DNA of 64,000 nucleotides from Macrostomum lignano (GCA_002269645.1 NIVC01001126.1:186001-250000); one strand, 5' to 3'; counted from the first letter of the stretch, positions 7,333-60,100 are shown. Notes: generated by a model not told the origin, from the sequence alone. Made by a program: numbers and translations.

Positions 7333-7587
7333 GCACAGGATAAACGGACTAATTATTTGTTTAACTAACCCAGCGTGCAGATAAATTATTATTCTACTTC
7401 GTATGAGCGTATTTTGAAAATTCATAAAATAGATAAAACTTGAAGCGATATGCGATCTTTTGCAAAAACGATGAACGCAATTCAATACAATTAAATAAAA
7501 ACAAACTTCAAATCTTAAATGTTCCTTCTTTTAACGACCAATTATGCCATCTTTCAGCAATTTTACTAAACCGGGCAAACAAAGAAA

Positions 7588-11165: not shown

Positions 11166-19548
<8,383 letters not shown>

Positions 19549-35170: not shown

Positions 35171-35923
35171 TCAGTTGAATGGCGACACGCACTCGCACAG
35201 CCCCGATGTTATCTCGGCATTGGCCTCATAGATATCAACCAGCATTTTCGCCCCTGGATAGCGGGCCACAACATTCTCCTTGTCACCTGGATCAGTGGGC
35301 TCTTCTTCCGCCCACAGGCTGCCGTTTAGGGTGATGTTGCAGCCGACCCAGTGCCAGCCTCCGTCGGGCTCAGCGCTCCCAGCAGGCTGCAAACCTCCGA
35401 GAAAGAAGGCCTTTCCTGAGCTGCGCAAATCGTAAATCTCGTCCACGTGGCTCATCTCGGTGGCGTCTTCCACGTCGGCCATGATCACCAGGCCGCTCTC
35501 CGACTCGCACTTCTGTCTGCTCTCCGACCAGTTTCCGGTGTTGTTGTACAGCTTGTACTTCACTCCGCACAGGTCGTCTCCGTAGCCAGACGGACACAGC
35601 GCGCCCGCCTCGAGTCCCGGCTGCTGCTTCACAAACACCCGGCCTCTCCTGGAGCAGCCGCAGTCCCTCACCGACTTGCTGCACTTGTCGAACACGAACA
35701 GCTGGCACGGACCGTCAGCCAGGCTGAACGCCTGACAGCGCCGGTTGCGGCTGCACAGGGCGGCACAGAAATACTTTGTCCCTGAGCCACCTGGAGTCTC
35801 AATGAAGTCGCTCCTGATGCACAGGTAGCCGGTGATCAGGTTGTAGGCGTCCTGCATCGCAGCTGGAGCTTGCAGAGCCAGCAGGACCAGGGCGACTTTC
35901 GCTTGGAGTCCGAGCGTCTTCAT
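35171..35923 (-). CDS. Secreted PAN/apple-like + C-type lectin domain protein, single exon, 250 aa
   Basis: Hydrophobic N-terminus (ALVLLALQAPA). PAN-like CAALCSRNRRCQAFS...CQL. CTLD hallmarks: CPSGY, W.ES...C, FLGG, W.W, LW...EP, C.C. Confidence 0.85.
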   Translation of the reverse strand: MKTLGLQAKVALVLLALQAPAAMQDAYNLITGYLCIRSDFIETPGGSGTKYFCAALCSRNRRCQAFSLADGPCQLFVFDKCSKSVRDCGCSRRGRVFVKQQPGLEAGALCPSGYGDDLCGVKYKLYNNTGNWSESRQKCESESGLVIMADVEDATEMSHVDEIYDLRSSGKAFFLGGLQPAGSAEPDGGWHWVGCNITLNGSLWAEEEPTDPGDKENVVARYPGAKMLVDIYEANAEITSGLCECVSPFN

Positions 35924-36386: not shown

Positions 36387-37180
36387 TCACGCGCAATCCG
36401 GGCTTCCTAAAGTTGAGTAGTTCAATCTGTCGGGTGCCTTCCGCGTGCGCTGGCAGCGATGACCTCTTTCAGGTTGTCCAGGCTCTTCCGTCGGGTTACT
36501 TGTGTTCTGGTCAGCAACACCTTGCTGTGACCTCTCCTGAGGCTCGCTAGTTTCAACGGGAATCCTTGGTTTTGTCTGCTCCAGATGATATCGGCTGTGT
36601 TTTCCGTCTTCCAATTGTACGCCCACAATTTTCTTACCTTCTCTAGCAACGATTTCACCGGGCTTCCATTTCTCGGTTTCGTTCCTGTAGGTCTTTACCC
36701 ACACCGGTTCTTTGGCCAAGGTCAACGTTGCCGTCCGAAGCAGATGTCCTCGCATTAACTCTGCAGGTGCCCTTCCTGTCGTGGAGTGACGGGAGTTCCT
36801 GTACTGTAGAAGAAAGCGGTCGACACTGGTTTGTAGATCGTCTTCGCCTCCTGATGCCGCCACATGGTTCTTCAGGTCTCTCACAAACCTTTCGGCAAGG
36901 CCGTTTGATCGTGGGTGGTACGGAGGCGTGAGCACGTGTCTGCATCCGTTTCCTTTGAGCCAGCCCTCCATCTCCACTGAAGTGAATTGTGGACCATTGT
37001 CAGTAACCAATGTTGCGGGAACACCTTCTTGCGAGAACGTTCTTCGGAAACGTCGGATAGTCTCTGCCGATGTGGTTGACTGCGTAACATGTACTTCTGC
37101 CCATTTGCTGTAGGCATCGACTATTACGAGCAGGTACTTGTTGCCCTTAAACGGTCCAGCGTAGTCTGCGTGCACACTTT
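36387..37180 (-). pseudogene. Out-of-frame integrase catalytic core (VHADYAGP, VDAYSKW, TDNGPQF, SNGLAER)
   Basis: It lies in a different frame from the pol ORF. The junction reads AAG T GTG CAC GCA GAC TAC at about 37176. Confidence 0.85.
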
Positions 37181-40100: not shown

Positions 40101-40203
40101 CGTTCCACTTGTTAACTTTGGCTATAGCCTCGAATCGCTGTAGCCATCTGCTGACCTCGGCAGGCACGTCTGTCTCCAGGGGTTCGATTGGAATCGTCGC
40201 CAT
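37147..40203 (-). CDS. Gag-Pol: two CCHC knuckles, protease (DTGS), RT (YQDD), RNase H (TDAS), integrase HHCC
   Basis: Single ORF from the ATG at 40203. It leaves frame just before the integrase core. Confidence 0.92.
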   Translation of the reverse strand: MATIPIEPLETDVPAEVSRWLQRFEAIAKVNKWNDDVLKYAFIAQLGKKAFNLLADAVLPAKPEEKTFDQLKTLLTNETKASKSGLAYRYAFHHMKQESGEDTSAYARRLRQAADNCEFTDLNDRLRVQFVFGLSNKDIVRKLLTEKLADLTWERVTSVASACEAVARGEKQMSSSEILSVKRTDRPRLPETRQNDRKAWQPTGYGKWNQQSHRDQTKCFCCGKDGHRKDVCQHRSKTCLNCGKTGHLKAVCKSNPSRPAQGSRQTVNVRAIEPQKDSSGPVGAQDSIFAVNGSCEEPSRRRITRLLLVNGANLHMIMDTGSVSSFVSLKVYQGLPLKSNLRPTARRFTAYQGDPVRVLGEVTVRVERGGAVANLPLFVVDHRDVEPIYGLDWIAELEPELYVAITQGGNADTTEERQSSRMSPVDTVKVSLSIRPGAKPVFCKPRPIPYGIQEDVKNELRRMESEGQLEKVQSSEWATPIVCVRKQSGSIRICGDYKITLNPVLEDMVSTTPSIDEVMSRLGRARKFSTLDLTNAYLQVSVDAETSQMQTWSTPFGLFRPTALAFGVKQAPAIFQSHMDKLLLNLDGVISYQDDILIWGQGQTDHDKRLNTVMKILENNGLRINADKSVLNKSSIRFLGYEISADGIRPLKEKVEAIAGLKEPSDLKQLQAFLGMVDFYGRCIPNLATLKESLTNLTRSGVRWTWGRQEQKAFNTIKERLLNAGLLKSFDPADNIILTTDASPVGLGAVLEQSSGPVLFISKTLTQAERNYAQIEREALAIVWAVKRLHKYLLGRKFVLRTDHHPLKFLFNPGKALSTVAAARLQRWAITLMEYDYVIECKRSEEIPVADALSRLNNSAAESEQFDVNSIQDSLLDIPVDKQRLRRTSMLDQEMRRLFALVKHGWTAQGIKELPTYARTRDELVIENGLLYRGIRLLIPQEERQRVLPLLHDGHIGADKMKSVARQCVWWPGIDADVTRHTKQCVACQTNKDHGASIQWASWPEESEKCARRLRWTV

Positions 40204-40812
40204 CCTCGTCACCAGTGTTGATTCTGAAGGCACAGACACTATAACACCAGTTTTGATGTAGCCTATAGCTAACTCGGTAATTTCTTAAGTGCTCCAGTTG
40301 AGCAGCTCTCACTATCACTTTTTATTTATTGTGGCCTTAGAACGAGGCACCGCTCATTCAAGTTGTACTGTAATGCTAGTGGCGGTCATGCCATAGATAA
40401 AAGTCTATATCAAATTAATACATCTAACATTTATTGTATTTAAATTTGAGGAGGCGACATCCGAATGGTGAGCTTCTATCTCTGTGTAGAAAGCGAGAAA
40501 GCGAGATGGGGGCTCGTGATTGGCCAGGGCCGTCCTGAGCCCTCACTCTTCCTCAGTTAAGCCTTAACCGTTGGGCTAGGACCTCTTCAATGGACCCCAT
40601 CACAGCAATTGTTCAACAAAGCTATTAAACAATAGCTCATATTTAAAAAGTGCGTGGTACGCTCGTACTTACCTCCTACAATCAGAAGCGTGTTAAAAGT
40701 TTCCACTTTGAAACCTGGTCAGGTCAACTTTTCTCAGACCTCAGCCAGAAATTACGCAATTCACACCACGTCTTGAGCTTGTCATCTGAACCGTGGGTGA
40801 TGCAAATTGGTT

Positions 40813-42590
40813 TGAGACACCTGGTCACTGCACCAGTGCAAGACACCTGGTCACTGCACCAGTGCAAGACACCTGGTCACTGCACCAGTGCAAGACACCT
40901 GGTCACTGCACCAGTACAATACACCTGGTCACTGCACCAGTGCAAGACACCTGGTCACTGCACCAGTGGAAGACACCTGGTCACTGCACCAGTGCAAGAC
41001 ACCTGGTCACTGCACCAGTACAAGACACCTGGTCACTACACCAGTGCAAGACACCTGGTCACTGCACCAGTGCAAGACACCTGGTCACTGCACAAGAGCA
41101 AGACACCTGGTCACTGCACCAGTACAAGACACCTGGTCACTGCACCAGTACAATACACCTGGTCACTGCACCAGTACAAGACACCTGGTCACTGCACCAG
41201 TGCAAAACACCTGGTCACTGCACCAGTGCAAGACACCTGGTCACTGCACCAGTGCAAGACACCTGGTCACTACACAAGAGCAAGACACCTGGTCACTGCA
41301 CCAGTGCAAGACACCTGGTCACTGCACCAGTGGAAGACACCTGGTCACTGCACCAGTGCAAGACACCTGGTCACTGCACCAGTACAAGACACCTGGTCAC
41401 TACACCAGTGCAAGACACCTGGTCACTGCACCAGTGCAAGACACCTGGTCACTGCACCAAAGCAAGACACCTGGTCACTGCACCAGTACAATACACCTGG
41501 TCACTGCACCAGTACAAGACACCTGGTCACTGCACCAGTGCAAAACACCTGGTCACTGCACCAGTGCAAGACACCTGGTCACTGCACCAGTGCAAGACAC
41601 CTGGTCACTGCACCAAAGCAAGACACCTGGTCACTGCACCAAAGCAAGACACCTGGTCACTGCACCAGTACAATACACCTGGTCACTGCACCAGTACAAG
41701 ACACCTGGTCACTGCACCAGTGCAAGACACCTGGTCACTGCACCAGTGCAAGACACCTGGTCACTGCACCAAAGCAAGACACCTGGTCACTGCACCAAAG
41801 CAAGACACCTGGTCACTGCACCAGTGCAAGACACCTGGTCACTGCACCAAAGCAAGACACCTGGTCACTGCACCAAAGCAAGACACCTGGTCACTGCACC
41901 AAAGCAAGACACCTGGTCACTGCACCAAAGCAAGACACCTGGTCACTGCACCAAAGCAAGACACCTGGTCACTGCACCAAAGCAAGACACCTAGTCACTG
42001 CACCAAAGCAAGACACCTAGTCACTGCACCAAAGCAAAACACCTGGTCACTGCACCAAAGCAAAACACCTGGTCACTGCACCAAAGCAAGACACCTGGTC
42101 ACTGCACCAAAGCAAGACACCTGGTCACTGCACCAAAGCAAGACACCTGGTCACTGCACCAAAGCAAGACACCTGGTCACTGCACCAAAGCAAGACACCT
42201 GGTCACTGCACCAAAGCAAGACACCTGGTCACTGCGCCAAAGCAAGACACCTGGTCACTGCACCAGAGCAAGACACCTGGTCACTGCACCAAAGCAAGAC
42301 ACCTGGTCACTGCGCCAAAGCAAGACACCTGGTCACTGCGCCAAAGCAAGACACCTGGTCACTGCACCAAAGCAAGACACCTGGTCACTGCGCCAAAGCA
42401 AGACACCTGGTCACTGCGCCAAAGCAAGACACCTGGTCACTGCGCCAAAGCAAGACACCTAGTCACTGCACCAGAGCAAGACACCTGGTCACTGCACCAA
42501 AGCAAGACACCTGGTCACTGCGCCAAAGCAAGACACCTGGTCACTGCACCAAAGCAAGACACCTGGTCACTGCACCAAAGCAAGACACCT
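40813..42590. repeat. 26-bp minisatellite (gacacctggtcactgcaccagtgcaa)n grading into an ...accaaagcaa variant
   Basis: About 68 units. Source of three spurious ORFs. Confidence 0.95.
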
Positions 42591-43144
42591 GTTCAATGCA
42601 CCAAAGCAAAACGCCTAAGCAACAATCTGAAAATCACTGCAAGTTTAAACCACAATGTCAAAGTTTTTCTCATTCCAGAGATGAACTTTTGGATTAATTT
42701 TTATTCGGATTTTCTGACGGTTTTCTATAGCTCACGTATATCTTAGTTTGTTTAACTGGATTGTTTCCAAGAAATTCTACACATATTTGAACATGCGATT
42801 TGTAAGCTTTTCTCTGTAGCCTTGAACGCAGAATCAGCCTGCATACAACATTGTTTTTATCCAGCCCCACGCATAGTCAGTATATAACAATATATATGTT
42901 TGTAAATTAATTAATAGTCGTTAATAGTTCATTAAAGTAATGGTAATAGTTTATAGTAAGTTTATATTTAATAGACTAGCAAGAAAACGGGTTAACCAAT
43001 TGTTACGGGCTAATGTCTGGGTTTGTCTACTGATAAGTAGAAAGTATAGAGTATGGCGTGACAAGCTTGGTTAGCGGGCAAAGAAATTCCGTCATGCGAC
43101 AGGGCAGAACGTAAGTAAAGGTTCTGTTGGGAGCACGAGACTTT

Positions 43145-43710
43145 CTCGCAGGAGGGTTTCCTGCAGGAGGGTTTACCACAGGAGAGTTTACCACAGGAGG
43201 GTTTCCCCGCAGGAAGGATTCCCACAGGAATTTTTCCCGCAGGGGATTCCCACAGGAAAGATTCTCGCAGGAGAGATTCCCGTAGGAGGGATTCCCGCAG
43301 GAGGGATTCCAGCAGGAGGTTTTACTACAGGAGGGTTTCCCCGCAGGAGAGATTCCCGCAGGAGGGATTCCCGTAGGAGAGATTCCCGCAGGAGGGATTC
43401 CCATAGGAGGTTTTACTACAAGATGGTTTCGCGCAAGAGAAATTCCCACCGAAGGGTTTCCCGCAGGAAGGATTCCTGCAGGAGTGATTCTCGCAGTAGA
43501 GATTCTCGCAGGAGGGATTCCCGCAGGAGGGTTTCCCGCAAGAGGAATTCCCATAGGAGGGATTCCAGCAGGAGGGTTTACCACAGGAGGGTTTCCCACA
43601 GGAAGGATTCCCACAGGAGGGTTTACCGCAGGAAGGATTCCCACAGGAGGGTTTCCCGCAGGAGTGTTTCCCGCAAGAGGAATTCCCATAGGAGGGATTC
43701 CCACAGGAAC
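43145..43710. repeat. Degenerate 15-bp minisatellite (attcccgcaggaggg)n
   Basis: Read directly; it lies downstream of the channel gene. Confidence 0.9.
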
Positions 43711-43880
43711 CATTTTTTGTTTCTTTGCTACGCTCGACTTTCGCATCGATGCTTTGCATTTATCAGAATAAATATCTTAGTAAATGTGACTATTACAAAT
43801 ACAAGCAAAATTGCAAATGAGTAGATCAATAATAATACATGTATTAAAATCAATATTTTTTTCTGGTCATGCAGTCACCA

Positions 43881-46800
43881 CTAGGCTGATGCCGTAAAAT
43901 CGTTTAACTCTTGCTGCTGAGCGCTCGTCTGCTCCGCTCTCCTATCAAACTGCTGCATCTGTCTCACCCGCAGCCGGTGATGAAGCGCCACTAGGAGGCT
44001 GGACAGCAGTTCAATGAGCTCGCACACGGTCAGAACTGAGACTCCGGACCACAGACCCAAGGCTCCTGCGATTGTATTGTTATATAAGAAACATGTTAGG
44101 CCACTCATTTAAAGTTTCTTGTCAAATACACTTCAGTCTACTTTCTATTGGGCATATATAATGCACACGGATTTTTAATTCTATTGAATGCGTCAAAAAA
44201 TGATGCTGTTATGCCAGGTTTATCGCTTGTCGCTCCGCCTAATGGCTCTTCAGTGGCTGGCGCGATATACAACGAGTGCAGAGACTGCGGGTGAAGCTTC
44301 ATTCCGCATCACTTTGAAATGACATTAAAACTCTTGTGTCTTTCTTTAGTAAAGGCAGAAGGGTTGCTGTGTGCACCCTGGCGCACTTTAAGCGACATAG
44401 GCACACAACCGGCGAGAGGCATTGCTGCCCATTCCGCCGACTCCCCTGAGCAGGCACACAAGCGCGCGGATACGTACGCAGTCACACACTCACACAGGAG
44501 TGTACAGCGGCCCTAACTATATTTATCGTTAGGCCCTCAAGGGGTTGGCCCTCAAGGCCGTTAATTGCACGAGCAGAGCCAGCCGAGATTCCAATTCAGC
44601 CTCATATTAATGTCAAGGACTACTCAAGTAGAAGGACTGGAAACTAAGATTCTTAGAAAAAGTTACGGAGGCTGGTTTTCGCCGAAAAATGCACTACGGA
44701 GATAGGAAGTTTTCACTTTTTTCATATCAAAATTGTTATTGCTTTCGATAGGAGGCAGACCCAGTGTTCATCTTTTGATATGTTCTGTTTTTCTTATTGC
44801 TCTATCGATATTCATAATTCTTTTTGTTTAGAAAATTAGCATTTTATGTTAATTTTTCATTCTACATGGCACAGCTCGGCTCTTTGGTTTTATGAATCTA
44901 TTCTATCGATCTCTGTTACACATATTGTTACACAGTCAGCTGAGAATGATAAAATACATTCATAAAACAATGAGCCGGGCCCGGGCCGCTGGTACATCAG
45001 AGGGCCCCCTGCCCTCGTATTCAGCCAGAGCTGCATTTTGCAAAAGTCTCCGTTGATCCTTGACCGACTCACCGCCCAAGTCAGCCATGAGGTTGGTGGC
45101 TGTATAAGCCGGCTCCTCCGTGATCTCATCTCCGAACTCATCGGAGGCTGACACTGTCAGTTTCAACAGCCGATTCTCCAGCTTCTCCAACAGATCCGTC
45201 AGGTGAGTCACCTGGTCATCTGTTCGCTCTACATCGCTAAGATGAGAGAACCGCTTGGCCCTCAGGTAGACATAGTAGATGCTGGCGATGCCCCTGGACA
45301 TCATGTAGTTGTTGGGGAAGGCCCAGTCCTGCAGGTGGCTCACCAGAAACTCCATCGCAGTCTCCGGCCGCAGCTTCGGCCAGGGCGAGGTGGCCAGCCG
45401 GATTTTGTAGCCGCGAACTTCGCACGGAGGCGGGCAGAATCTCCGGGCCTCGAGCTCGTAAGAGTACAGCTGGCGCAGCTGCCTGGAGTGGCACTGCTCC
45501 GTCTGATGCACCTGCTGCGGCTCCGAGGTGTTGAAGCAGCCGGGGTGGCCCGCCAGGTCCGCGGGGATCGGCAGGAAGGAGGGCAGGCAGCCACAGTTGG
45601 CGAAGAAGCGGCGCACTTTGAAGGCGTTGAGGCAGTCCTCCTGCCGGGCTGCCGGGAACTGCAGCGACTGGGAGACCGGGCCTCTGCGGGGGGACATGGG
45701 GAGTGCTGGGATCTGTGCTGGGATCTGTGCTGGGATCTGTGCTGGGATCTGTGCTGGGATCTGTGCTGGGATCTGTGCTGGGATCTGTGCTGGGATCTGT
45801 GCTGGGATCTGTGCTGGGATCTGTGCTGGTATCTGTGCTGGTATCTGTGCTGGGATCTGTGCTGGGATCTGTGCTGGTATCTGTGCTGGGATCTGTGCTG
45901 GGATCTGTGCTGGGATCTGTGCTGGGATCTGTGCTGGGATCTGTGCTGGGATCTGTGCTGGGATCTGTGCTGGGATCTGTGCTGGTATCTGTGCTGGTAT
46001 CTGTGCTGGGATCTGTGCTGGGATCTGTGCTGGGATCTGTGCTGGGATCTGTGCTGGGATCTGTGCTGGGATCTGGGGCACAGGGATCTGGGGCACAGGG
46101 ATCTGGGGCACAGGGATCTGGGGCACAGGGATCTGGGGCACAGGGATCTGGGGCACAGGGATCTGGGGCACAGGGATCTGGGGCACAGGGATCTGGGGCA
46201 CAGGGATCTGGGGCACAGGGATCTGGGGCACAGGGATCTGGGGCACAGGGATCTAGGACCTGCACTCCCAGCAACCAGCGAGTGACCACCCAAATCCGGA
46301 CTGCACCTTGAGCTGCTCAACTTCTCCAGGACTCGTTTCAGTTCCGCAATCTTGGCTGTCCAATTGGTCGCTGAGAACATTCGGCTGAGGTCGAGGCTCT
46401 CGCTGCAGTGTATGAGGTTGCATTTATTGGTACCTTTAACTCGAATTAGCAATTGATGACTTGGTAACTTAGTAGCTGAGCTACCCACATTCATCGCTGC
46501 ACCACTCTCATCTTTGTCACTCTCATCCTTGTCACTCTCATCTTTGTCACTCTCATCCTTGTCACTCTCATCCTTGTCACTCTCATCTTTGTCCCTCTCA
46601 TCCTTGTCACTCTCATCTTTGTCGCTCTCATCCTTGTCGCTCTCATCCTTGTCACTCTCATCCTTGTCACTCTCATCTTTGTCCCTCTCATCCTTGTCAC
46701 TCTCATCTTTGTCGCTCTCATCCTTGTCACTCTCATCTTTGTCGCTCTCATCCTTGTCACTCTCATCCTTGTCACTCTCATCTTTGTCACTCGCCCTGTC

Positions 46801-49800
46801 ACTCGCCCTGTCACTCGTTTCTTGCTTATTCAATGTATCACTCCGGATCGTCACTCTCATACTGACAGTCCATCAAAAATCAGCCTCACTTAAGCTGCAC
46901 CCAGGTGTTATTCCAATTCGGCAACAAATAGGTGATCGGCCTCGTTTCGCTGACGCACTCTCGATGTGGCGGTTTTGAGTAGCGAGTAGTCTTGCTGTAG
47001 CGGAGCCGCAGGTCCGTGTGCTGGCCGGGGCTGAGGTTAATGATGTCCGATGGCCAGGGGTACTCAGAACGGGGCACCACCAGCACCTTCGTGGGTGGTT
47101 GTTTTTTTGAGGGGCTGGCTTATATGAAGTAATTAGTGGAGCTATTTAGACGCAACTTTATAACAAGATTTACGAATTCATTTTACTAGTCACTCCATCG
47201 TCACTCTACTAGTCACTCCACCATCACTCTACTAGTCACTCCACCATCACTCTACTAGTCACTCCACCATCACTCTACTAGTCACTCCACCATCACTCTA
47301 CTAGTCACTCCACCATCACTCTACTAGTCACTCCACCATCACTCTACTAGTCACTCCACCATCACTCTACTAGTCACTCCACCATCACACATGCACACAG
47401 CCCCATGCCTCTAAAAATAAAAGGTCACTCCATCGTCACTATGCTAGTCACTCCAGCGTCAAAATTTACTATTCACTTCACGGTCACTCTCCTATAAGTC
47501 ACTCGCGCATTCTTACGCGCATGGCGCTGCTGTCGCTGTCAAAGTCGCCTGAGCCCGGTCGCAGGATGCGCGCCAGCTTGCTGGCGTTGTCGAAGCGCCT
47601 GCCGACGGAGTCGGTGGCGTCGGTGAAGAAGCCGACACTCAGGCGGGCCTCGGCAGGTCGCAGCAGCCGCCACGGATCCTCGGAGGCCACCGGGCGGAAG
47701 CGGTGGCACAGGCCGAGCCGCGGGTGCAGCAGCGTCTGGAAGTCGGCGGCAGAGCAGCGGCGGCCGGCGAATCGGCAGCCCGAGAGGCCGGCGGCCACGT
47801 CGCTGCCGAACTGCCGCCACAGAAGGCCGCGGCCGGCGCCGGCCGATACGGACTCGGACACCGCGGTCACGGCGCGGTCTGCGGTACGGCGGAGGCTTTG
47901 GGGTGTCAGTGGATGCATTGGGGTGTCAGTGGATGCATTGGGGTGTCAGTGAATGCATTAGGGTGTCAGTGGATGCATTGGGGTGTCAGTGGATGCATTG
48001 GAGTGTCAGTGAATGCATTGGGGTGTCAGTGGATGCATTGGAGTGTCAGTGAATGCATTGGGGTGTCAGTGGATGCATTGGGGTGTCAGTGGATGTATTC
48101 GGGTGTCAGCGAAGGCGTGAAGATGTCTGTAGATGATTTATGAGCAAAGCGACTACATTAAGCCTCTCTGGCAAGCTCCTGGATGCAAAATTAACGTTGA
48201 ATAGCAGTCTGTTGCCAGGGACTCACAGCATGGCTTGACGCTGCAAATTCTGAATTGAGCATATCCCCGCCGATTGGACTTCGAGAAGCAGGAAGGCACG
48301 GCTGAGGCTGATAGAAGACTGCGGCGGCTGTTTTTAAGCAAATACGTCAATTTTAACTACTAGTAGTAGAAATAGTAACATTTTTGTTAATTTTTTTTCC
48401 AAAAGATTTTCCTTACAAATAAGTTCCATTCTTCCATAGATAATCCACCATGACTTTGGCTTGACGGCAATGGTTGTGGTTCACCTTCAGCTCGAGATCC
48501 GGGGTTTCAACGTGAACTCGAATGACGTCTGCGAAATTCACGTTTGTAAAGTTTGTTTAGTTTCAAGCATGTCGAAAAGATTTCTAGTAGACAAATTGAT
48601 CAGGTCAAATTCAAGGATATCATTCAATCTAACTGGGATTTTCGGCCTTCAAAGTCGGCTCCAGCTGGTCCCAAGCGATGCAGTCGCGTCCCAAGTTGTC
48701 GGCGCTCTGACTTCCGGTGTACCGACCGGAGTGGCTCCTGTCTGGCTGGCTGCCGCGACTTGACGAAGGAACGCAGTCATAGTTAGGTGACATTGCTGCG
48801 GATTTAGTTGCCAGGGTAGCGAAAGAAGTTTTTCAAGGTGAATCACCAAGCTTAAAATGGAATCGAGGCAATTGCAGCGGCCCTGACTTTCTCTCATAGG
48901 TGAGAATGCACGAGCCAAAATGTGCCCTAGTGGTATCATGTGCCAAAGCCTACGCTCGATTCGGAATACTGGCTTATAACTACCGAAGTTATATTATTAG
49001 ACGACTTTTTCTATCAACACTTACAAACTCATTTCACCAGTCACTCCACCGTCACTCTACTAGTCACTCAACCGTCACTCTACTAGTCACTCCCAGTCAC
49101 TTTGCTAGTCACTCCACAGTCTCTCTACTAGTTCACTCTACTAGTCACTCAACCGTCACTCTACTGGTCACCTCCAGTCACTTTGCTAGTCACTCCACAG
49201 TCACTCTACTAGTCACTCCACCGTCACTCTACTAGTCTCTCGAGCGTCATTTTACGGTAGCCGCAGCCCAGTGGTCTGGCGCGGCGCTCTGGTGTGCCAG
49301 CGGCCCAGGCTCGATTCCCAGTGCAGTCACATTAATTTGGGGCTAAATTGGAATATCGGCTTGGCTCTGCTCGTGCAATTAACGGCCTTGAGGGCCAACC
49401 CCCAAGACGCAGTGAAGTGTACATGCCTAACGATAAATAAAGTTAGGACCGCTGTACACTTCTGCGTGAGTGTGTGCCTGTGCGTATGACTGCGTACGTA
49501 TCCGCGCGCTTGTGTGCCTGCTCAGGGGAAGTCGGCGGAATGGGCAGTAATGCCTCTCGCCGGTTGTGTGACAATGTCGCTCAAAGTGCGCCAGGGTGCA
49601 CACAACCCCTGGAGGAACGAAATTAAGACAATAATGTGCTTATCGTGCTACTCACGACAGTAAGGCACGTTGCAGTAAGCCGCTGAAAGCTGACCAAGTT
49701 CATCATGGTAGAAGCAGTACGGCCCGTCGTTGAAACTGGAAATCGAACTCCGGAACGCCAAGATTAGCGGCTTTGGTGCTGAAATCAGTGTTAATAACGA

Positions 49801-52800
49801 TTGAGCAGCTCACCTGAATGTCTAACCCTAACATGAAAATGAAAATGAAAATGAAAAAAGAAACTTTCACTCCACAACTATATAAAATAGAACAGAGTCA
49901 CATGCGGTAACCTTCACTGCCCCAGATCAAATGCAATCATTTATTTTCTGTGAAAAAAAGATTTTCTCTTATCTCCGCAGTGTATTTTTTCCCGGAAATC
50001 GGCCGCTTAAAAATTAAACGATTTTTTAGTTCTACCAGGTACGTCCTGTGATACTACAGTGGTCGTTGATCCTGTGATACTACAGTGGTCCTTGAACCTG
50101 TGATACTACAGAGGTCCTTTTGATCCTGTGATACTACAGTGGTCCTTGAACCTGTGATACTACAGTTGTGCTTTTGATCCTGTGATACTACAGTGGTCCT
50201 TGAACCTGTGATACTACAGTGGTCCTTGAACCTGTGATACTACAGTGGTCCTTGATCCTGTGATACTACAGTGGTTCTTGAACCTGTGATACTACAGTGG
50301 TCCTTGAACCTGTGATACTACAGTGGTCCTTTTGATCCTGTGATACTACAGTGGTCCTTTTGATCCTGTGATACTACAGTGGTCCTTGAACCTGTGATAC
50401 TACAGTGGTCCTTGATCCTGTGATACTACAGTGGTTCTTGAACCTGTGATACTACAGTGGTCCTTGAACCTGTGATACTACAGTGGTCCTTTTGATCCTG
50501 TGATACTACAGTGGTCCTTCAACCTGTGATACTACAGTGGTCCTTGAAACTACAATGGTCCTTGAATCACGTGCGTGGTGTGAACCGCGTCACTTGGGGC
50601 TAAGATTTACCTTGGAACATAAGCAAGAGTTTCATTTTATCCATGTGGCCTGGTGGTGAATTGCTTGAATTGCAAAGCACTCACCTTCATGCCTCATTTG
50701 ATAGACGCTTAAGTAGCCTCCAACTCCGCCGCACTTTTGCTTATAACCGAAAGGACAAGTTGAGTCGCAATGCTCGTCTCCTTGAGGACGGTTCCACAGA
50801 AATTTCCTGGTGCAATGGCAACCCCTCGGGCTCAGTCCGATGTAGCTGAAGTTGCTATTGAAGCAGCACTGGGCGCAGTTGCTGGTCGACCAGCGCATGG
50901 CGTAATCAATTCTGTCCGCATTGGGTGTCTCACCTGGCTTATAGATTCGTTCGTACATTGAGCCGCATATGGAGAATGCGGAGCCCACCGTGTCATTGTG
51001 GAAACAGCCCCTGTACCTGTGGAATGGATCTGGAAAGATTTGTATAGATTTTACTTTTCTACTCATTATGGTCACTAGAGAGTCACCACCAGTCACCACA
51101 CTGAAGGCTCTCACAAGCTGCCACCAGTCACCACACTGAAGGCTCTCACAAGCTGCCACCAGTCACCACACTGAAGGCTCTCACAAGCTGCCACCACACT
51201 GAAGGCTCTCACAAGCTGCCACCACACTGAAGGCTCTCACTCGCTGCCACCACACTGAAGGCTCTCACTCGCTGCCACCACACTGAAGGCTCTCACAAGC
51301 TGCCACCTTCCGCAGGTCAGTCAGCGGCAGTCCTCGCGGCTGTCGGCACCTTCTGTCGTTCTCCGAGAAATTCATCGCTAGGATGCGGTCAGTGATGGAG
51401 CGCCCAGCCTCCCCCAGCGCCCTGGCAGCGCGGTTCCAGCTGATGCACTGCCGGTGCGTGACGTAGGGCCGGAAGCGGCTCAGGTTCAGGGGCTGCGTGG
51501 GTTCCAGAGGCTCAAATAGGATGCCATCTGAGTACACAGGGACTGCGGACTGGTTGCCTGAGTACTCCTCCCCTGAGTGAGTCGTGCGGCAGAGGCTCGG
51601 GTCCGCTGAAACGGTTTGGGGTCAGCTGGGGTCAGCAGGTGATGAGTCCCTACAGCAGACACTAACCAGTAGCACACAGACACTCACCGGTAGCACAGAG
51701 ACACTCACCGGTAGCACAGAGACACTCACCGGTAGCACGCAGACACTCACCGGTAGCACAAAGACACTCACTGGTAGCATGTAGACACTCACCGGTAGCA
51801 CACAGACACTCACTGGTAGCATGCAGACACTCACCGGTAGCATGCAGACACTCACCGGTAGCACACAGACACTCACCGGTAGCACACAGACACTCACCGG
51901 TAGCACGCAGACACTCACCGGTAGCACAGAGACACTCACCGGTAGCACACAGACACTCACTGGTAGCACACAGACACTCACCGGTAGCATGCAGACACTC
52001 ACCGGTAGCACGTAGACACTCACTGGTAGCACACAGACACTCACTGGTAGCACACAGACACTCAACGGTAGCACACAGACACTCACCGGTAGCACACAGA
52101 CACTCACCGGTAGCACGCAGACACTCACCGGTAGCACACAGACACTCACCGGTAGCACGCAGACACTCACCGGTAGCACACAGACACTCACCGGTAGCAC
52201 GCAGACACTCACCGGTAGCACACAGACACTCACCGGTAGCACAAAGACACTCACCGGTAGCACACAGACACTCACCGGTAGCACAGAGACACTCACCGGT
52301 AGCACAGAGACGCAAATTTAATTCAACTGCAAGCCATGTTCACACAGTTTTCTATTGGTTGCAATGTGAAGCAGCTTTCTTGCTTGCACAAAATAAAAAA
52401 CTGAAAGCAAAAAAGCGATTTCAACAAGATCTTAACTTGATGCTTATCAAAAAATTAATTTGAATCGTCGAATTTCTATTTTGATTCAAATTGGATAGGC
52501 CTGTGAAGATTGCAGGGTATAAATTGATAGAATCAATTAAAAAACTGTTTGATTTCTCGTATAGCATGGCAGACTGACTTCAGAAACTACTAAAAAGCCC
52601 TAAACATGAAGTAGCGAAGTAGCTGTTTAAAATAAAGTGCTGAAAAAAGGAAAAGGAATGCAGTATTTTCTAAACAATAGAAGTGATAAATAAGGACAGA
52701 GCGAAAACGTGATAAAACACAAGATATTCATAATATCAATAGTTTTTATAGATTTTGTAAGCTTTCAAGATGAACCAGTATTTAGTTTAAAGAAATCAAA

Positions 52801-55800
52801 TTTTAACTTTTGCCCAAATACAAAATCTAAAAAAACCGTAAAAATAACTTTAAAACACACTAGTTTGGTATGAGCTCAAAAAGATTTGATTTAATTGACA
52901 CTTGAATTTTAATTTCAAACTTAACAACTGCGTACTTTTTATTCACGTAATTTGTGTCTTTTTATTAAATACACCCCTGCCCCAATTGGGCCAGATGTGC
53001 AACCGACAGCTCAGCCGCAGCTATTGCGCGGCGCATCTGAAGGCTGCGTACGGCTGTTCAGTCCAAGGACTGGGGGGGGGGGTCTCCACACACACCCTCA
53101 ATTACCCCAGCTAATGCTGGCACCCTTTTACAGCTGGGTGAACTGAAGCAATGCAGAGTCTTGCTCAAGGACACAAATTGTTCCGAGTGGGTCGAGAATC
53201 GAACCCCCGACCTTTCAGTCGTGAGTCTGAAGCTCTAACCACTAGGCAAAACCCAATTAGTAAGCTAAATTTATTCATAGTACATCAATTAACTGTAATA
53301 ACTGTATAATATTTACCGTAACTAAATTAAAGGTCATATTGTTCCATTTCAGACTAAGAACTCCGACTCTCGCTCTTCACAGTCTTAATATATAATATTG
53401 TAGCTTACATGCTACATGAGGTTATTCAAATAAGCAGAATTCTGATTGACGATAGAACATTGCCAGCGTACCTCCAACGAATATAGGGATTGTAATAATA
53501 GTAGGCACCTCCGGTGGGAAGACAACTCTGACAGTTATTAAACCACCATCCGCCATTGCCATAGTTGGAGACACACGATCCAGGGCTCTGATCGTTGTCC
53601 ATAGTGGCAAACTTCATGCCTTTGTGAAAGTTCAGCGAGTCGCCGGTTGCGTTGGAGCTGGCTGTCAGCTGTGAAAGGAACGTCATGGTGTTGCTCGTGC
53701 TGGCATCGCCAACTGAGAATCCGGAGTATTCGTCAACGTAGGAAACGCCTGTAGTGGACACGGTCTCCACTCTCAGCTTTCTGGGAGTGCTGCCGGTCAG
53801 TTCGTTGATCTTTCTTAGACCTGAAATAAATTCGGCATTCCAGATAGAACAACTACCAGAGCGGTGTGCGAGGATCTATGATCTCTTTCTACCGAGCCCT
53901 GTCACAACAGAACGAACTGGAGTGCTTTATTCATAGGCGAGTTCCGTAGCCCAGTGGTATGGCGCGGCGCTCTGGTGTGCCAGCGGCCCCTCAGGCTTGA
54001 TTCCAAGTGCAGTCAATTTAATTTTGGGGCTAAATTGAAATCTCGGCTTGGCTCTGCTCGTCCAATTAACGGCCTTGAGAGCCAACCCCTAAGGTTAGGA
54101 CCGCTGTACACTCCTGTGTGAGTGTGTGCCTGTGCGTATGACTGCGTACGTATCCTCGCGCTTGTGTGCCTGCTCAGGGGAGTCGGCGGAATGGGCAGTG
54201 ATGCCTCTCGCCGTTCGTGTGACAATGTCGCCTAAAGTGCGCCATAGCTCGTAGGCTCAACCCTTGACAATCTGTCTGATCAACAGAGCCCAGTCTCACC
54301 GAGCCAAACGTCCACTCCGTCTCCAAATCCGTCTTCGTACTCAATCCAGGTCCGGGCGAAGCTCATAGTTAATTGCGAACGACTCAGCATAACGTAGTAC
54401 CCCGGAGTCGGACTGGGCGCTGTAGTAGGATTAGTTGTTGTTAATTCCTCTAAAAATCAGTGCCACTAAGCTAGCAATCCCAGGCATTTTTTTACCTTTC
54501 ACCCTTCGTTAGACGATGCTGCGCGGAGCGGCAGCTGAGAAGTCGGCGTTGTTCGCGACGGAGAACAGGCACACCTGAGCCTCCTCCAGGTAGGCGGTGG
54601 CGGCGCACACGGCCAGACCAGCGGCCGAGCACTGCACAGTGCAGTGCATGTCGCTGCTGCCACGAGCCGATGTTATCAGAGCTGTTGAATTCAGCGACTC
54701 CACCAGGTCAGTCGAGTACTCTGTGGTGTTGCGGCCATGCACTCGGGATTGACAATTGTGACCTGGTACTCCTTGTTCAAAACGAAAAAAATGAGATTCG
54801 TTTAAATTGGCTTACCTGCATCGTCGAGACCGCTGGCTGCTGCGGCGCGAATCGCAGCGCAGATGAACAGTAGAATGGCGCGGTACATTTGTCGGAAGGT
54901 TCAAGTGAGTGAGTTGAGCTTAATTTTCTTTAGACAGGGAGCGCGCCTCCCGAATGAGCGCCTCTATTTATGCCCAACTGATAAACAGCCCCCCCCCGAA
55001 AGCGTGGGAGCCGCCTTCCGACTTGAGTACCTCCATCTCTTGGCAACGTGTGTCGGAAATACACACACACAAACACACACACACACACACACAGTCCCCC
55101 TTCCCTCCATTACTCAAGATTGGCGGTTGTTCCCAGCAACTCTGCTGCGTATTGTCTAAAAACTTTTACCCGTAACCACTGGCAGATTAGGGATGCTGAG
55201 CTGAGTTGTTGACAAGATGGATGTTGTTTCTTCTTCCTACTTTCTCTGATGCATCTTATGATGAAGCCTCAACTTAAACTGCTTACTTTGGGGCAAAGCC
55301 TCCGCTTGAGCATAGACCTCACTGAATTGACTTTACAGAGAAGCCCACAGCAAAAAGCTGCAGAAGTCAGGGAAAAACTGCTCTTGCTAATTGATTTTTA
55401 CCAGGCCTCAGCGCTTACCCTCTCCGCTCTCATCTTTTCGGAGATGAGTTTCTTTAGTTAAGTTTTTTTTCAACTTTTGTATGCTCCGCCTCTCTACATA
55501 GAGGGCTGCCTATGGATTTTTCTTGGAATGAGACAGAATCCTTGGTCTAATCGATGACCGAAGGGATAGAAAGGATTACTCATCAGCAGAGGCTCTATGG
55601 CCCAAGTGCATTTTTTAGGATTTTCACTCATTTGTTTTTATAGTTCGTACCAGGGGTAAATGACTGCAATCCCGTCCGCTGAGAATGTCTATGGTAAAAA
55701 CTGCCATGGTTCAATGCTTTCAGTTGGTTTCACAGCCCGCCGAGAAAGTCTATGGTAGAAACTGGCATGGATCAATCTTTCAGTTGGCTTCACGGTACGC

Positions 55801-56682
55801 CGAGAATGTCTATGGTAAAACCTGGCATGGATCAATGCTTTCAGTTCGTTTCACGGTCCGCCGAGAAAGTCTATGGTAGAAACTGGCATGGATCAATCTT
55901 TCAGTTGGCTTCACGGTACGCCGAGAATGTCTATGGTAAAACCTGGCATGGATCAATGCTTTCAGTTGGTCTCACAGCCCGCCAAGCCGGCTCACAGACT
56001 CTCACTGTGACTCACAGGCACTCACGGTGACACACAAAGACACTCAATGTGACTCACAGACTCTCACTGTGACACACATAGACACTCACTGTGACACACA
56101 CAGGCACTCACAGTAACACTCACCAGTCCCAGTGAACTGCAGCGACTCAACCAGCTCATCCTCAGCCGCCATCACAGCCTCCGACAGAGCCTGTGCTGCA
56201 TCGCTGAAGTGGCCGCTGGATTGATGAGGCGGGAAGCTGCTGGAGTCTGAGATGTCAAACTTGAGCAGCGCCTCAATCAGCGAGTTCTTGTACGGCTTGA
56301 ACCCCGGCCGCTTGTAGGAATGTGAGCTCAGCTCCGTACCGCTCTCCACCTGCCTGCTCAGCCTGCTCATGGTCACGTGATCAGCTGGGCACAGGTAAAT
56401 ATCGGGGAACTGAAATTGCAGATTAGCGGTGACTCCGGTTGTCAAGGGAACGCTGAGATAATGAGCTGCCAGGCAGTACATGTGGTAGGCGAATCCGCAG
56501 TACGTGAGCAGAAGGAAGCTGAGCCACATCATCCTGCCGCAGCGGCTGCTCTGCGACCCCAGGCGGCCCAGGCCGTGAGCAGTCGTGTAGTTGGTGAAGT
56601 GCAGCAGTGACTGCCGCAGTTTTGCGCCATCAGCTGCTGGCGGCGAGCTTTCGGCTCGACAACTTCTGGGGTCTGTCGACAT
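43881..56682 (-). CDS. DEG/ENaC (degenerin/FaNaC-like) sodium channel subunit
   Basis: Core exons: 56682-56124, 47878-47517, 47086-46890, [46402-46307], 45683-45073, 44065-43881, all phase-consistent. Motifs: [11 protein letters not shown]1, [17 protein letters not shown]....[14 protein letters not shown]....LSPG, thumb Cys (DC...CGC...C...C...CPPPC), [30 protein letters not shown] (TM2, GxS filter). Confidence 0.93.
44361..44612 (-). mobile_element. SINE family A, copy 3, inverted and lacking the tRNA head
   Basis: Reverse complement of the body of copy 1 (ggcgcactttaagcgaca...gcagagccagccgagattcc). Confidence 0.7.
45705..46255. repeat. Compound intronic array: 12-bp (ggatctgtgctg)n then 15-bp (atctggggcacaggg)n
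   Basis: Read directly. Confidence 0.95.
46503..46810. repeat. 15-bp intronic array (ctctcatccttgtca)n
   Basis: Read directly. Confidence 0.95.
47185..47390. repeat. 23-bp intronic array (catcactctactagtcactccac)n
   Basis: Read directly; a related array lies at 49040-49240. Confidence 0.9.
47895..48110. repeat. 20-bp intronic array (gggtgtcagtggatgcattg)n
   Basis: Read directly. Confidence 0.9.
48227..51605 (-). CDS. Six exons encoding kringle(N)-WSC-kringle(C)-kringle 2 (384 aa), probably part of the DEG/ENaC mRNA
   Basis: 51605-51297 ([20 protein letters not shown]); 51029-50685 (WSC: YRGCF, CAQCC, YIGL, CHC, CDSTC, CGG, LSVY); 49778-49656 (GPYCFY, YCNVPYC); 48795-48634, 48528-48417 and 48327-48227 ([32 protein letters not shown]). 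The block opens with a phase-1 acceptor and closes with a phase-1 donor. Confidence 0.8.
49040..49240. repeat. Decayed 23-bp array of the same family as 47185-47390
   Basis: ctctactagtcactccaccgtca units. Confidence 0.8.
49261..49605 (+). mobile_element. tRNA-derived SINE, family A, copy 1
   Basis: A-box-like GCCCAGTGG and B-box-like GGCTCGATTCC. Closely similar to 53944-54244. Confidence 0.7.
50050..50550. repeat. 26-29-bp intronic array (cctgtgatactacagtggtccttgaa)n
   Basis: Read directly. Confidence 0.9.
51085..51300. repeat. 28-35-bp intronic array (ccaccagtcaccacactgaaggctctcacaagctg)n
   Basis: Read directly. Its first unit on the minus strand supplies the splice donor of the kringle-N exon. 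Confidence 0.85.
51665..52310. repeat. 21-bp intronic array (gcacacagacactcaccggta)n
   Basis: Read directly. Confidence 0.95.
52975..53248 (-). mobile_element. tRNA-head SINE, family B, with a CORE-like domain
   Basis: The minus strand reads GCCTAGTGGTTAGAGC...GGTTCGATTCTCGACCC, then TGTGTCCTTGAGCAAG...CACCCAGCTGTAAA. Confidence 0.65.
53426..54888 (-). pseudogene. Nested signal peptide-PAN-fibrinogen C-terminal (FReD) gene with one in-frame TAA (54509-54511)
   Basis: Exons 54888-54816 ([19 protein letters not shown]), 54762-54496 (CTVQC...CAATAY...C.L), 54419-54300 ([17 protein letters not shown]) and 53820-53426 ([32 protein letters not shown]) are phase-consistent. It could be a pseudogene, a null allele or a base error. 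Confidence 0.8.
53944..54244 (+). mobile_element. tRNA-derived SINE, family A, copy 2 (in intron 3 of the FReD gene)
   Basis: Collinear with copy 1 over ~300 bp. Confidence 0.7.
55670..55985. repeat. Five ~59-60-bp tandem units (cgccgagaatgtctatggtaaaacctggcatggatcaat...)
   Basis: Two alternating variants form a ~119-bp dimer. Confidence 0.85.
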
Positions 56683-57199
56683 TGGGATTGCAGATCAGAG
56701 CGAACTCAGTTTTCCCCAGAATAATGCATATTTATGTACCCCGAATTCTCATGTGACTTCGACTCCAACCCGAAAACTCGATCAGATCGCTCAGACAAGT
56801 TCGATTGAACTGTAGGCGAAATCGCAGTCAAATTCGCTGCTCCGGGTAAGGCAATTTTGTGTTTTGCCAATGCCACTCGATCGGGCTGTCATCGCAGAGT
56901 CACACGTCCGTCTGTCGCGTGGATTTCCGTTCTAAGCGATTATGCCAGACTTGGGATGCTGCATTCGGCCGATGGCAACTGGCTATTATTTCTGACTGAT
57001 TGATGCAGCAACTGGTCACAGTGAACAGTTGGATACGAGTGCCACACATGAAAGATCAGATAGAAATGAAAAGCCATGAAAATGTTTCGTATTAAAAGTG
57101 CCAATATTGTTCTGCTAAATGATAGATACGAGCGTATAGCAACTTGTTGCTCCTGATTGCGCTGCAATATGGTGTAGTTCATCGTTTTTGAAGGTTCCC

Positions 57200-60100
57200 T
57201 ACTGACGTTGCAGGTGTCTTACTGATGTTGCAGGTGTCTTACTGATGTTGCAGGTGTCTTACTGATGTTGCAGGTGTCTTACTGACGTAGCAGGTGTCTT
57301 ACTGATTTTGCATGCGTCTTACTGATGTTGCATTGTCTTACGTACTGACGTTGCAGGTGTCTTACTGATGTTGCAGGTGTCTTACTGATGTTGCATTGTC
57401 TTACGTACTGACGTTGCAGGTGTCTTACTGATGTTGCAGGTGTCTTACTGATGTTGCAGGTGTCTTACTGATGTTGCATTGTCTTACGTACTGACGTTGC
57501 AGGTGTCTTACTGATGCTGCAGGTGTCTTACTGATGTTGCAGGTGTCTTACGAACTGATGTTGCAGGTGTCTTACGTACTGATGTTGCAGGTGTTTTACT
57601 GATGTTGCAGGTGTCTTACTGATGTTGCAGGTGTCTTACTGATGTTGCATTGTCTTACGTACTGATGTTGCATGTGTCTTACGTACTGATGTTGCAGGTG
57701 TCTTACGTACTGACGTTGCAGGTGTCTTACTGATGTTGCAGGTGTCTTACTGATGTTGCATTGTCTTACGTACTGACGTTGCAGGTGTCTTACTGATGCT
57801 GCAGGTGTCTTACTGATGTTGCAGGTGTCTTACGAACTGATGTTGCAGGTGTCTTACGTACTGATGTTGCAGGTGTCTTACTGATGTTGCAGGTGTCTTA
57901 TTGATGTTGCAGGTGTCTTACTGATGTTGCATGTATCTTACGTACTGATGTTGCAGGTGTTTTACTGACGTTGCAGGTGTCTTACTGATGTTGCAGGTGT
58001 CTTACTGATGTTGCAGGTGTCTTACTGATGTTGCAGGTGTCTTATGTACTGATGTTGCAGGTGTCTTACTGATGTTGCAGGTGTCTTACTGATGTTGCAT
58101 TGTCTTACGTACTGATGTTGCAGGTGTCTTACGTACTGATGTTGCAGGTGTCTTACTGATGTTGCAGGTGTCTTATGTACTGATGTTGCATGTGTCTTAC
58201 TGATGCTGCAAGTGTTTTACTGATGTTGCCGGTGTCTTACTGATGCTGCAGGTGTCTTACTGATGTTGCAGGTGTCTTACTGATGTTGCAGGTGTCTTAC
58301 TGATGTTGCAGGTGTCTTACTGATGTTGCAGGTGTCTTACTGATGTTGCAGGTGTCTTATGTACTGATGTTGCAGGTGTCTTACTGATGCTGCAGGTGTC
58401 TTACTGATGTTGCAGGTGTCTTACGAACTGATGTTGCAGGTGTCTTACGTACTGATGTTGCAGGTGTTTTACTGATGTTGCAGGTGTCTTACTGATGTTG
58501 CAGGTGTCTTACTGATGTTGCATTGTCTTACGTACTGATGTTGCATGTGTCTTACGTACTGATGTTGCAGGTGTCTTACGTACTGACGTTGCAGGTGTCT
58601 TACTGATGCTGCAGGTGTCTTACTGATGTTGCAGGTGTCTTACGAACTGATGTTGCAGGTGTCTTACGTACTGATGTTGCAGGTGTCTTACTGATGTTGC
58701 AGGTGTCTTACTGATGTTGCAGGTGTCTTACTGATGTTGCATGTATCTTACGTACTGATGTTGCAGGTGTTTTACTGACGTTGCAGGTGTCTTACTGATG
58801 TTGCAGGTGTCTTACTGATGTTGCAGGTGTCTTACTGATGTTGCAGGTGTCTTATGTACTGATGTTGCAGGTGTCTTACTGATGTTGCAGGTGTCTTACT
58901 GATGTTGCATTGTCTTACGTACTGATGTTGCAGGTGTCTTACGTACTGATGTTGCAGGTGTCTTACTGATGTTGCAGGTGTCTTATGTACTGATGTTGCA
59001 TGTGTCTTACTGATGCTGCAAGTGTCTTACTGATGTTGCCGGTGTCTTACTGATGCTGCAGGTGTCTTACTGATGTTGCAGGTGTCTTACTGATGTTGCA
59101 GATGTCTTACTGATGTTGCAGGTGTCTTACTGATGTTGCAGGTGTCTTATGTACTGATGTTGCAGGTGTCTTACTGATGTTGCAGGTGTCTTACTGATGT
59201 TGCATTGTCTTACGTACTGATGTTGCAGGTGTCTTACGTACTGATGTTGCAGGTGTCTTACTGATGTTGCAGGTGTCTTATGTACTGATGTTGCATGTGT
59301 CTTACTGATGCTGCAGGTGTCTTACTGATGTTGCAGGTGTCTTACTGATGTTGCAGGTGTCTTACTGATGTTGCAGGTGTCTTACGTACTGATGTTGCAG
59401 GTGTCTTACTGATGTTGCAGGTGTCTTACTGATGCTGCAGGTGTCTTACTGATGTTGCAGGTGTCTTACTGATGTTGCAGGTGTCTTACGTACTGATGTT
59501 GCAGGTGTCTTACTGATGCTGCAGGTGTCTTACTGATGTTGCATGTGTCTTACGTACTGACGTTGCAGGTGTCTTACTGATGTTGCAGGTGTCTTACTGA
59601 TGTTGCATGTCTTACTGATGTTGCAGGTGTCTTACTGACGTGCAGGTGTCTTACTGATGTTGCATGTCTTACTGATGTTGCATGTCTTACGTACTGATGT
59701 TGCAGGTGTCTTACGTACTGTTGCAGGTGTCTTACTGATGTTGCATGTCTTACTGATGTTGCAGGTGTCTTACTGATGTTGCAGGTGTCTTACTGATGTT
59801 GCAGGTGTCTTACTGATGTTGCAGGTGTCTTACGTACTGATGTTGCAGGTGTCTTACTGATGTTGCAGGTGTCTTACTGATGTTGCATTGTCTTACGTAC
59901 TGACGTTGCAGGTGTCTTACTGATGCTGCAGGTGTCTTACTGATGTTGCAGGTGTCTTACTGATGTTGCATGTGTCTTACTGATGTTGCATGTGTCTTAC
60001 GTACTGACGTTGCAGGTGTCTTACTGATGTTGCAGGTGTCTTACTGATGTTGCATTGTCTTACGTACTGACGTTGCAGGTGTCTTACTGATGCTGCAGGT

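Follow-up and report, generated by a model that had tools for sequence, protein, structure and literature searches.

A WSC exon lies between the halves of a putative, highly divergent kringle-like module in a DEG/ENaC channel intron of Macrostomum lignano

A 64,000-nucleotide (nt) stretch of the Macrostomum lignano assembly (GCA_002269645.1 NIVC01001126.1:186001-250000; hereafter the window, in whose numbering all positions are given) contains, on its minus strand, a complete WSC module encoded by a single exon which is placed between two exons that appear to carry the N- and C-terminal halves of one kringle-like module, K1 (exons K1_N and K1_C). A second module of the same kind, K2 (exons K2a, K2b and K2c), sits immediately 3' of K1 and its WSC exon, and the six exons together form a block inside the first intron of a DEG/ENaC channel gene. 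Kringles are autonomous, disulfide-knotted mobile modules. The initial annotation of this region described a WSC exon inserted in the middle of a kringle; K2 was absent from it, as was the channel context, in which the block occupies a phase-1 intron with a probable nested pseudogene alongside.

K1_N, the WSC exon and K1_C are real, intact class 1-1 coding exons. When the minus strand was read and translated, the coordinates, phases and cysteine counts originally given for them all proved correct (Table 1): each exon opens with two bases that finish a codon and closes with one spare base, and is thus of phase 1-1, and the splice sites of the WSC exon were graded as strong. Their stop-to-stop open runs (118, 176 and 53 codons for K1_N, WSC and K1_C, respectively) exceed chance expectation, and the GC content at third codon positions (GC3) in the predicted frame, at 0.77, 0.63 and 0.62, compares with a GC content of 0.42-0.53 in the neighbouring introns; the raised GC3 of the block exons matches the bias of the channel exons on the same strand. 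The whole block K1_N-WSC-K1_C-K2a-K2b-K2c is open, with AG/GT borders and phases of 1-1, 1-1, 1-1, 1-1, 1-2 and 2-1; its 384 codons are free of stops and frameshifts, and the cysteine numbers counted in the sequences are even in each module (six in K1, ten in WSC, six in K2). K1_N and K1_C can be joined with or without the WSC exon into a single open frame, which bears out the earlier proposal that skipping this exon would keep the frame; the companion proposal, that skipping would restore a contiguous kringle, stands for the frame but not for a canonical kringle, as a spacing of 37 residues would remain between Cys3 and Cys4.

The identity of the middle exon as WSC is firm by sequence comparison. 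It matches Pfam PF01822 at E = 5.9e-5 and 23.6 bits (profile positions 24-82), under the gathering score of 27.8, and the match starts only at position 24 because there is an insertion in the N-terminal third of the exon. In an exhaustive phmmer search of 1.84 billion representative proteins, eight gave E <= 1e-3, the best of them with 2.3e-9 and 31% identity, and each of the eight carries between one and six WSC repeats (Pfam E down to 4e-102), in agreement with the original description of a complete WSC module. Read against the disulfide list of Kremen1 (PMC5014086), eight of the ten cysteines stand at canonical WSC positions and two are extra. A phmmer search of the exon against PDB chains gave no Kremen match, and an AlphaFold2 model of the exon alone, made from the single sequence, was too poor for use (pLDDT 44.9).

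For the flanking exons, much of the evidence comes from K2, which was located by a tblastn search of the window with the K1_N peptide (related stretch at 48736-48653); apart from K2, the same approach located no other copy of these exons within the window. K1_N and K2a are paralogues (48% identity across 29 residues, E = 5e-5), and because K2 also scores better against kringle models, the kringle label for K1 is strengthened. Spliced K2 (48795-48227) matches the Pfam Kringle family at E = 0.0036 with 18.0 bits over profile positions 8-53. A further kringle profile was built from eight human kringles, the sequences of which were entered by hand and then aligned, and its hidden Markov model (HMM) was scored against 2000 composition-preserving shuffles of each sequence: the scores of K2 (18.1 bits) and K1_C (13.4 bits) were reached by none of the 2000 shuffles, and that of K1 (10.5 bits) by one. 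With hhalign, K2 covers columns 7-79 of the eight-kringle profile with Cys2 to Cys6 in register (P = 6.4e-4), K1 alone aligns at its C-terminus only (P = 6.6e-4), and a profile of the K1 and K2 pair matches it across 76 columns (P = 6e-5, with a probability of 65%). By these controls the similarity of K1 and K2 to kringles is above chance, and we tentatively regard both as very divergent kringle-like modules, not as canonical kringles.

Each of the two modules has exactly six cysteines, and K1_N carries the motifs C-x4-G-E-x-Y-x-G and N-x2-C-R-Q-P-x-G. K2 is nearer than K1 to canonical kringles. Its Cys2 and the accompanying Trp align to Gly and Phe of K1, and the CISW of K1 therefore belongs to an extra stretch of about 25 residues; the canonical Cys2 column of K1 is occupied by Gly, the nearest Cys lying within that stretch. 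The initial assignment of the first three cysteines is right in number, but in this alignment the Cys of CISW is a displaced Cys2. The distance from Cys1 to Cys2 is 46 residues in K1 and 30 in K2.

Table 1. Positions of the exons and repeats discussed in the text (window numbering; a slash marks a splice border; TM, transmembrane segment; SINE, short interspersed element)
Feature	Position	Strand	Description
K1_N exon	51605-51297	minus	309 nt, phase 1-1, acceptor TTTCAG/CG, donor CTT/GTGAGA, 3 Cys; N-terminal half of kringle-like module K1 with Cys1, displaced Cys2 and Cys3 (RQCISWN, RRCRQPRG, KVAA)
WSC exon	51029-50685	minus	345 nt, phase 1-1, acceptor TTTCCAG/AT, donor GAAG/GTGAGT, 10 Cys; includes YRGCFHND
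K1_C exon	49778-49656	minus	123 nt, phase 1-1, acceptor ATTTCAG/CA, donor TGTC/GTGAGT, 3 Cys; C-terminal half of K1 with Cys4-6 (GPYCFY...YCNVPYC)
K2a exon	48795-48634	minus	Phase 1-1; Cys1, canonical Y-x-G to Cys2 spacing; Pfam Kringle positions 8-31
K2b exon	48528-48417	minus	Phase 1-2; Cys3; donor TT/GTAAGG
K2c exon	48327-48227	minus	Phase 2-1; Cys4-6
DEG/ENaC (ASC) channel exon 1	56682-56124	minus	Start codon, HG motif, TM1, part of finger; donor ACTG/GTGAGT, phase 1
Channel exon 2	47878-47517	minus	Acceptor CCGCAG/AC, phase 1; conserved C-x-F-x-G-x2-C motif
Channel exon 3	47086-46890	minus	From splice-site reading
Channel exon 4	45683-45073	minus	Cys-rich region, CPPPCE motif; Pfam ASC positions 296-436
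Channel exon 5	44065-43881	minus	TM2, C-terminus, stop codon
Signal peptide-PAN-like-FReD unit	54888-53426	minus	In channel intron 1, same strand; from Pfam scan and splice sites
Signal-peptide exon	54888-54816	minus	Convincing signal peptide; donor CAG/GTAAGC
PAN-like exon	54771-54496	minus	In-frame TAA at 54511-54509, four codons before phase-1 donor
FReD exon A	54449-54300	minus	Fibrinogen-related
FReD exon B	53820-53426	minus	Fibrinogen-related; ends in TGA
28-nt minisatellite	51094-51307		Fills most of the 267-nt intron between K1_N and WSC
Minisatellite	50045-50548		In the intron between WSC and K1_C
SINE-like repeat, about 270 bp, 3 copies	49336-49604 and 54023-54244 (direct); 44368-44492 (inverted)		Roughly 90-96% identity

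The gene that surrounds the block is, judged by its domain matches, a complete member of the DEG/ENaC (ASC) family. Its five exons, when joined (43881-56682, minus), encode 637 amino acids (aa) with one uninterrupted match to Pfam ASC (PF00858) at positions 1-455 of 455 (162 bits, E = 3e-47), and exon 1 matches profile positions 1-165 (E = 5e-13). The best match in the PDB is the FMRFamide-gated sodium channel FaNaC (E = 3e-16; closest structures 7yvb and 8on7), with ASIC and ENaC also matched. Channel intron 1 is 8.2 kb long and of phase 1 at both ends; it holds a unit with PAN and fibrinogen-related (FReD) exons followed by the K1(WSC)-K2 block. Exons 1 and 2 meet in the finger region, a part of the protein that aligns to no solved channel; their junction is some 32 residues upstream of the C-x-F-x-G-x2-C motif. 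The finger of DEG/ENaC channels is a site of family-specific insertions. What the locus shares with DEG/ENaC channels that have enlarged fingers is a full-length ASC host with a candidate insertion point in the variable finger; no channel of this family bearing a kringle or WSC module turned up in the literature search or among the relatives of the WSC exon.

Channel exon 1, the block and channel exons 2-5 form one open reading frame (ORF) of 1021 codons, and the frame also stays open when the WSC exon is left out. The WSC exon, K1_N, K1_C and the K2 module as a whole are all of class 1-1 and the host intron is of phase 1 at either end, the configuration that characterizes shuffled class 1-1 modules. 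A search of 53426-51606 for a signal-peptide first exon belonging to the block gave nothing credible, only minisatellite artefacts and a weak candidate at 53036-52973 (donor GTATTT). The K2c donor (TGCT/GTGAGT) agrees with the consensus and stands 349 nt upstream of channel exon 2, and in these 349 nt there is no in-frame terminal exon and no AATAAA or ATTAAA. We mildly favour the block exons being cassette exons of the channel gene. If spliced in, the block would furnish the variable extracellular finger of the channel with a kringle(WSC)-kringle module, and an isoform switch is conceivable in which either the WSC exon or the entire block is skipped without loss of the frame. The chance that the nested architecture exists in some mRNA is, in our judgement, about even. 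That this mRNA would be the one of the channel is a tentative proposal, and a DEG/ENaC subunit whose finger contains a WSC module nested in a kringle-like Cys3-Cys4 loop, and then a second kringle-like module, is likewise to be taken as possible but doubtful. A read-through product of channel exon 1, the PAN and FReD exons, the block and channel exon 2 was also considered and was rejected on account of the TAA in the frame of the PAN exon and the TGA that terminates FReD exon B.

A number of observations should make one cautious about this assignment. The channel does not need the block to be complete; the phase match between block and channel intron has a prior of about one in three; the intron already hosts a dead-looking gene and so tolerates non-functional exons; and the donor of K2a (A/GTTAGA) is weak. 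Word-indexed searches with spliced K1-WSC-K1, with channel exon 4 and with the 1021-aa model gave no protein homologues at E <= 1e-3, and metagenome scans gave no match. According to Pfam, none of the eight relatives of the WSC exon has a kringle or ASC domain, and the literature search yielded no paper in which a kringle and the DEG/ENaC family occur in one protein. There is a real, if less than even, possibility that the block is an unexpressed relic of another mosaic gene which was copied into, or left in, the channel intron and is still open because it is recent. Neither a first nor a last exon belonging to the block was found, its neighbour in the intron carries a premature TAA and a truncated FReD, and both the completeness of the channel and the failure of the protein searches to find relatives, together with the weak K2a donor, would be in keeping with such a relic. 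However, a relic would not readily account for six exons in which every splice site has been kept and neither stop nor frameshift has arisen, for the even cysteine numbers or for the GC3 that is raised in frame; had the block been drifting, its marked departure from canonical kringles would more probably have been accompanied by decay.

As to how the nested layout arose, the position of the introns in the two modules is informative. The codon split in K1 is the 17th after Cys3 (following KVAA), and this is the site of the WSC exon; in K2 the split codon is also the 17th after Cys3 (following NGTY), and it is interrupted by a plain 89-nt intron in which there is no WSC exon. A WSC exon at an intron position common to paralogues is to be expected if it was inserted into an intron that the kringle already possessed, and exon shuffling into such an intron, as the initial annotation had suggested, is the most likely origin on the present comparison. 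The support from the paralogue, which that annotation had named as a comparison worth making, is not complete: K2 has its intron in the same codon and lacks WSC there, but the K2 intron is of phase 2 and both junctions of K1 are of phase 1. A phase 1-1 exon would therefore not fit the matching intron of K2 unchanged, and either the splice sites have shifted by a single base or the intron positions in K1 and K2 do not coincide exactly. On the preferred origin, the WSC exon would have landed in, or shifted locally into, a pre-existing intron inside the kringle-like K1, whose long Cys3-Cys4 loop would thereby have been interrupted by a complete WSC module carried on a separate exon. The disulfides of kringles pair 1-6, 2-4 and 3-5 (PMC5014086), and the kringle fold would accordingly have to close around the WSC domain.

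The proposed event resembles the shuffling of class 1-1 modules, such as the FN2 modules inside MMP2, in which a 1-1 module exon is found in a phase-1 intron of another domain or gene and in which both gain and loss of the module keep the frame (PMC3927616, PMC8001218). It differs in that the recipient is a small disulfide-knotted mobile module and not a large catalytic domain, and in the phase 2 of the matching intron in the paralogue; no report of insertion into a small disulfide-knotted module such as a kringle was found in the literature search. In vertebrate kringle genes such as LPA and plasminogen, each kringle is likewise divided between two exons by an intron within the domain; those of the KIV-2 kringle in human LPA measure 160 and 182 bp (PMC4378929). 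The borders of kringle modules are of phase 1 (PMC3927616), and the 160-nt first exon of LPA implies an internal intron in a phase other than 1, whereas the internal junctions of K1 are both of phase 1; a 1-1 exon could not enter the LPA intron, because its phase differs from that of the phase-1 borders. The site at the 17th codon after Cys3 is common to K1 and K2.

The same layout could also have come about by local duplication and exon loss, starting from a Kremen-like tandem (K_N, K_C, WSC) or from a kringle-WSC-kringle arrangement, in which case K1_N and K1_C may derive from different ancestral kringles. A kringle followed directly by WSC is a known pairing, the order in Kremen1 being kringle then WSC in tandem (PMC5014086), as the initial annotation correctly stated along with the disulfide pattern; the exons are of phase 1-1, so that each could be lost or duplicated without a break in the frame, and a second kringle-like module adjoins. 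We nevertheless consider this origin unlikely, as tblastn of the window gave no trace of a K_C, a K_N or another WSC exon that had been lost, as the intron between K1_N and WSC measures just 267 nt, nearly all of it minisatellite, and as more events are needed than for one insertion. In Kremen1 and Kremen2, kringle and WSC are likewise combined in one extracellular unit, tightly packed in Kremen1 (PMC5014086), but the Kremen order is kringle, WSC, CUB and a transmembrane segment, whereas here the WSC exon stands between Cys3 and Cys4 of a kringle-like module that is far more divergent. No CUB match was found among the minus-strand ORFs of at least 35 codons scanned in 43000-57500, and with its nested order the locus does not have the tandem kringle-WSC-CUB and transmembrane organization of a Kremen-like receptor.

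Upstream of the block, channel intron 1 also contains, on the same strand, the unit of signal-peptide, PAN-like and FReD exons. It is probably a pseudogene, because of the in-frame TAA in its PAN exon and because about 20-25 aa of the FReD core are missing. AATAAA or ATTAAA signals occur downstream of this unit at 53275 and 52966. Its presence bears on the view, which seems to us improbable, that the block represents an independent nested gene for a secreted protein, the promoter and the signal-peptide and terminal exons of which have gone unrecognised or which shares the exon at 54888-54816. That exon does encode a good signal peptide with a phase-1 donor (CAG/GTAAGC) upstream of the block, there is already a nested unit of the same orientation in this intron, and kringle and WSC domains are typical of secreted or type I membrane proteins such as Kremen (PMC5014086). 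However, the exon is continued by the PAN and FReD exons of its unit, whose stop at 53426 comes before the block is reached, and the 349 nt which precede channel exon 2 offer neither an in-frame terminal exon nor an AATAAA or ATTAAA signal.

Objections to calling the flanking exons kringle halves are found in the profile scores and the loop lengths. The joined halves without WSC score 12.2 bits against Pfam Kringle (PF00051; E = 0.24), over profile positions 59-79 and the last 23 residues only, and both this and the 18.0 bits of K2 fall short of the gathering score of 34.3 bits. Trimmed K1 had no match in Pfam, and phmmer of the joined halves against all PDB chains found no kringle. K1_N by itself is marginal, its HMM score of 4.2 bits being reached by 17 of the 2000 shuffles. 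A comparison of the halves joined and separate, proposed at the outset as a check, gave 12.2 bits with Pfam and 10.5 bits with the HMM for the joined halves and, with the HMM, 13.4 bits for K1_C and 4.2 for K1_N; the two halves came up to no kringle threshold. The Cys3-Cys4 spacing is 37 residues in K1 without WSC and 152 with it, and 29 in K2, against 10-11 in the human kringles (n=8), and neither module has the canonical loop lengths or the compact size of about 80 residues. It could be argued from these figures that the exons are lineage-specific, cysteine-rich linkers which resemble kringles by chance, and that WSC within a kringle is an artefact of pattern matching. We think this improbable, since K1_C and K2 outscore 2000 of 2000 composition-matched shuffles, K2 occupies kringle profile columns 7-79 with Cys2-Cys6 all in register, K1_N is a paralogue of K2a, and the combined K1 and K2 profile aligns to that of kringles over 76 columns. 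The earlier description of the flanking exons as kringle halves can thus be retained in the form of divergent kringle-like modules, supported by K2, the shuffles and the profiles, but it does not extend to a kringle that passes the Pfam threshold or finds a match in the PDB.

It is very improbable that local misassembly placed the WSC exon between the halves of K1: minisatellites fill both flanking introns (51094-51307 and 50045-50548) and two SINE-like copies, about 93-96% identical and 4.65 kb apart, lie around the region, but the junction sequences are ordinary, the three exons are mutually compatible in splice sites and phase, and the SINE-like copies bracket a larger segment and not the WSC exon alone.

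The 28-nt unit of the minisatellite next to K1_N spans the last 11 nt of that exon and its GTGAGA donor, so that the donor is repeated about seven times. Almost all splice sites of these genes have a minisatellite adjoining them, further examples being those at 55993-56119, 47898-48109, 45703-46254 and 51656-52311, and several other minisatellite units contain donor motifs similar to GTGAGTG. Two of the SINE-like copies start within about 50 nt downstream of donors, namely those of K1_C and FReD exon A, and ARAGORN found no tRNA in the region. Capture of exons by a transposable element was considered and rejected, as the copies near these two donors are ordinary independent insertions which do not reach the exons.

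Elsewhere in the window, a Ty3/gypsy-type retroelement was found at 36387-40239 (minus), with gag, protease, reverse transcriptase, RNase H and the integrase zinc-binding domain in a 1030-codon ORF and the integrase core in a separate ORF of 295 codons, the frame being interrupted between the two. A single-exon ORF of 250 codons at 35171-35923 (minus) has a hydrophobic N-terminal leader and many cysteines and looks secreted; no Pfam family matches it at E <= 1e-3. HEAT repeats (Pfam HEAT and HEAT_2) are encoded by several ORF fragments at 14053-19548 (minus), which alternate with long minisatellites and are probably exons of a gene for a HEAT-repeat protein. The very long minisatellite arrays at 40650-42700 (plus) and 7531-8922 (both strands) contain ORFs of 430-630 codons, which are mechanical products of the repeats and not genes.

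If the WSC module does lie inside a kringle, this would mean that even small knotted folds can serve as recipients in exon shuffling, with K2 representing the state before the insertion, and it would be, as far as searched, the first domain found nested inside a kringle. If the block is spliced into the channel, the DEG/ENaC family would gain an ectodomain module of the ligand-binding style in a finger that is relevant to gating, and this mosaic channel would be, again as far as searched, the first found in the family with shuffled class 1-1 modules. Should the block instead be unexpressed, the locus would still provide a snapshot of the raw material of shuffling, in the form of class 1-1 exons parked in a phase-1 intron.

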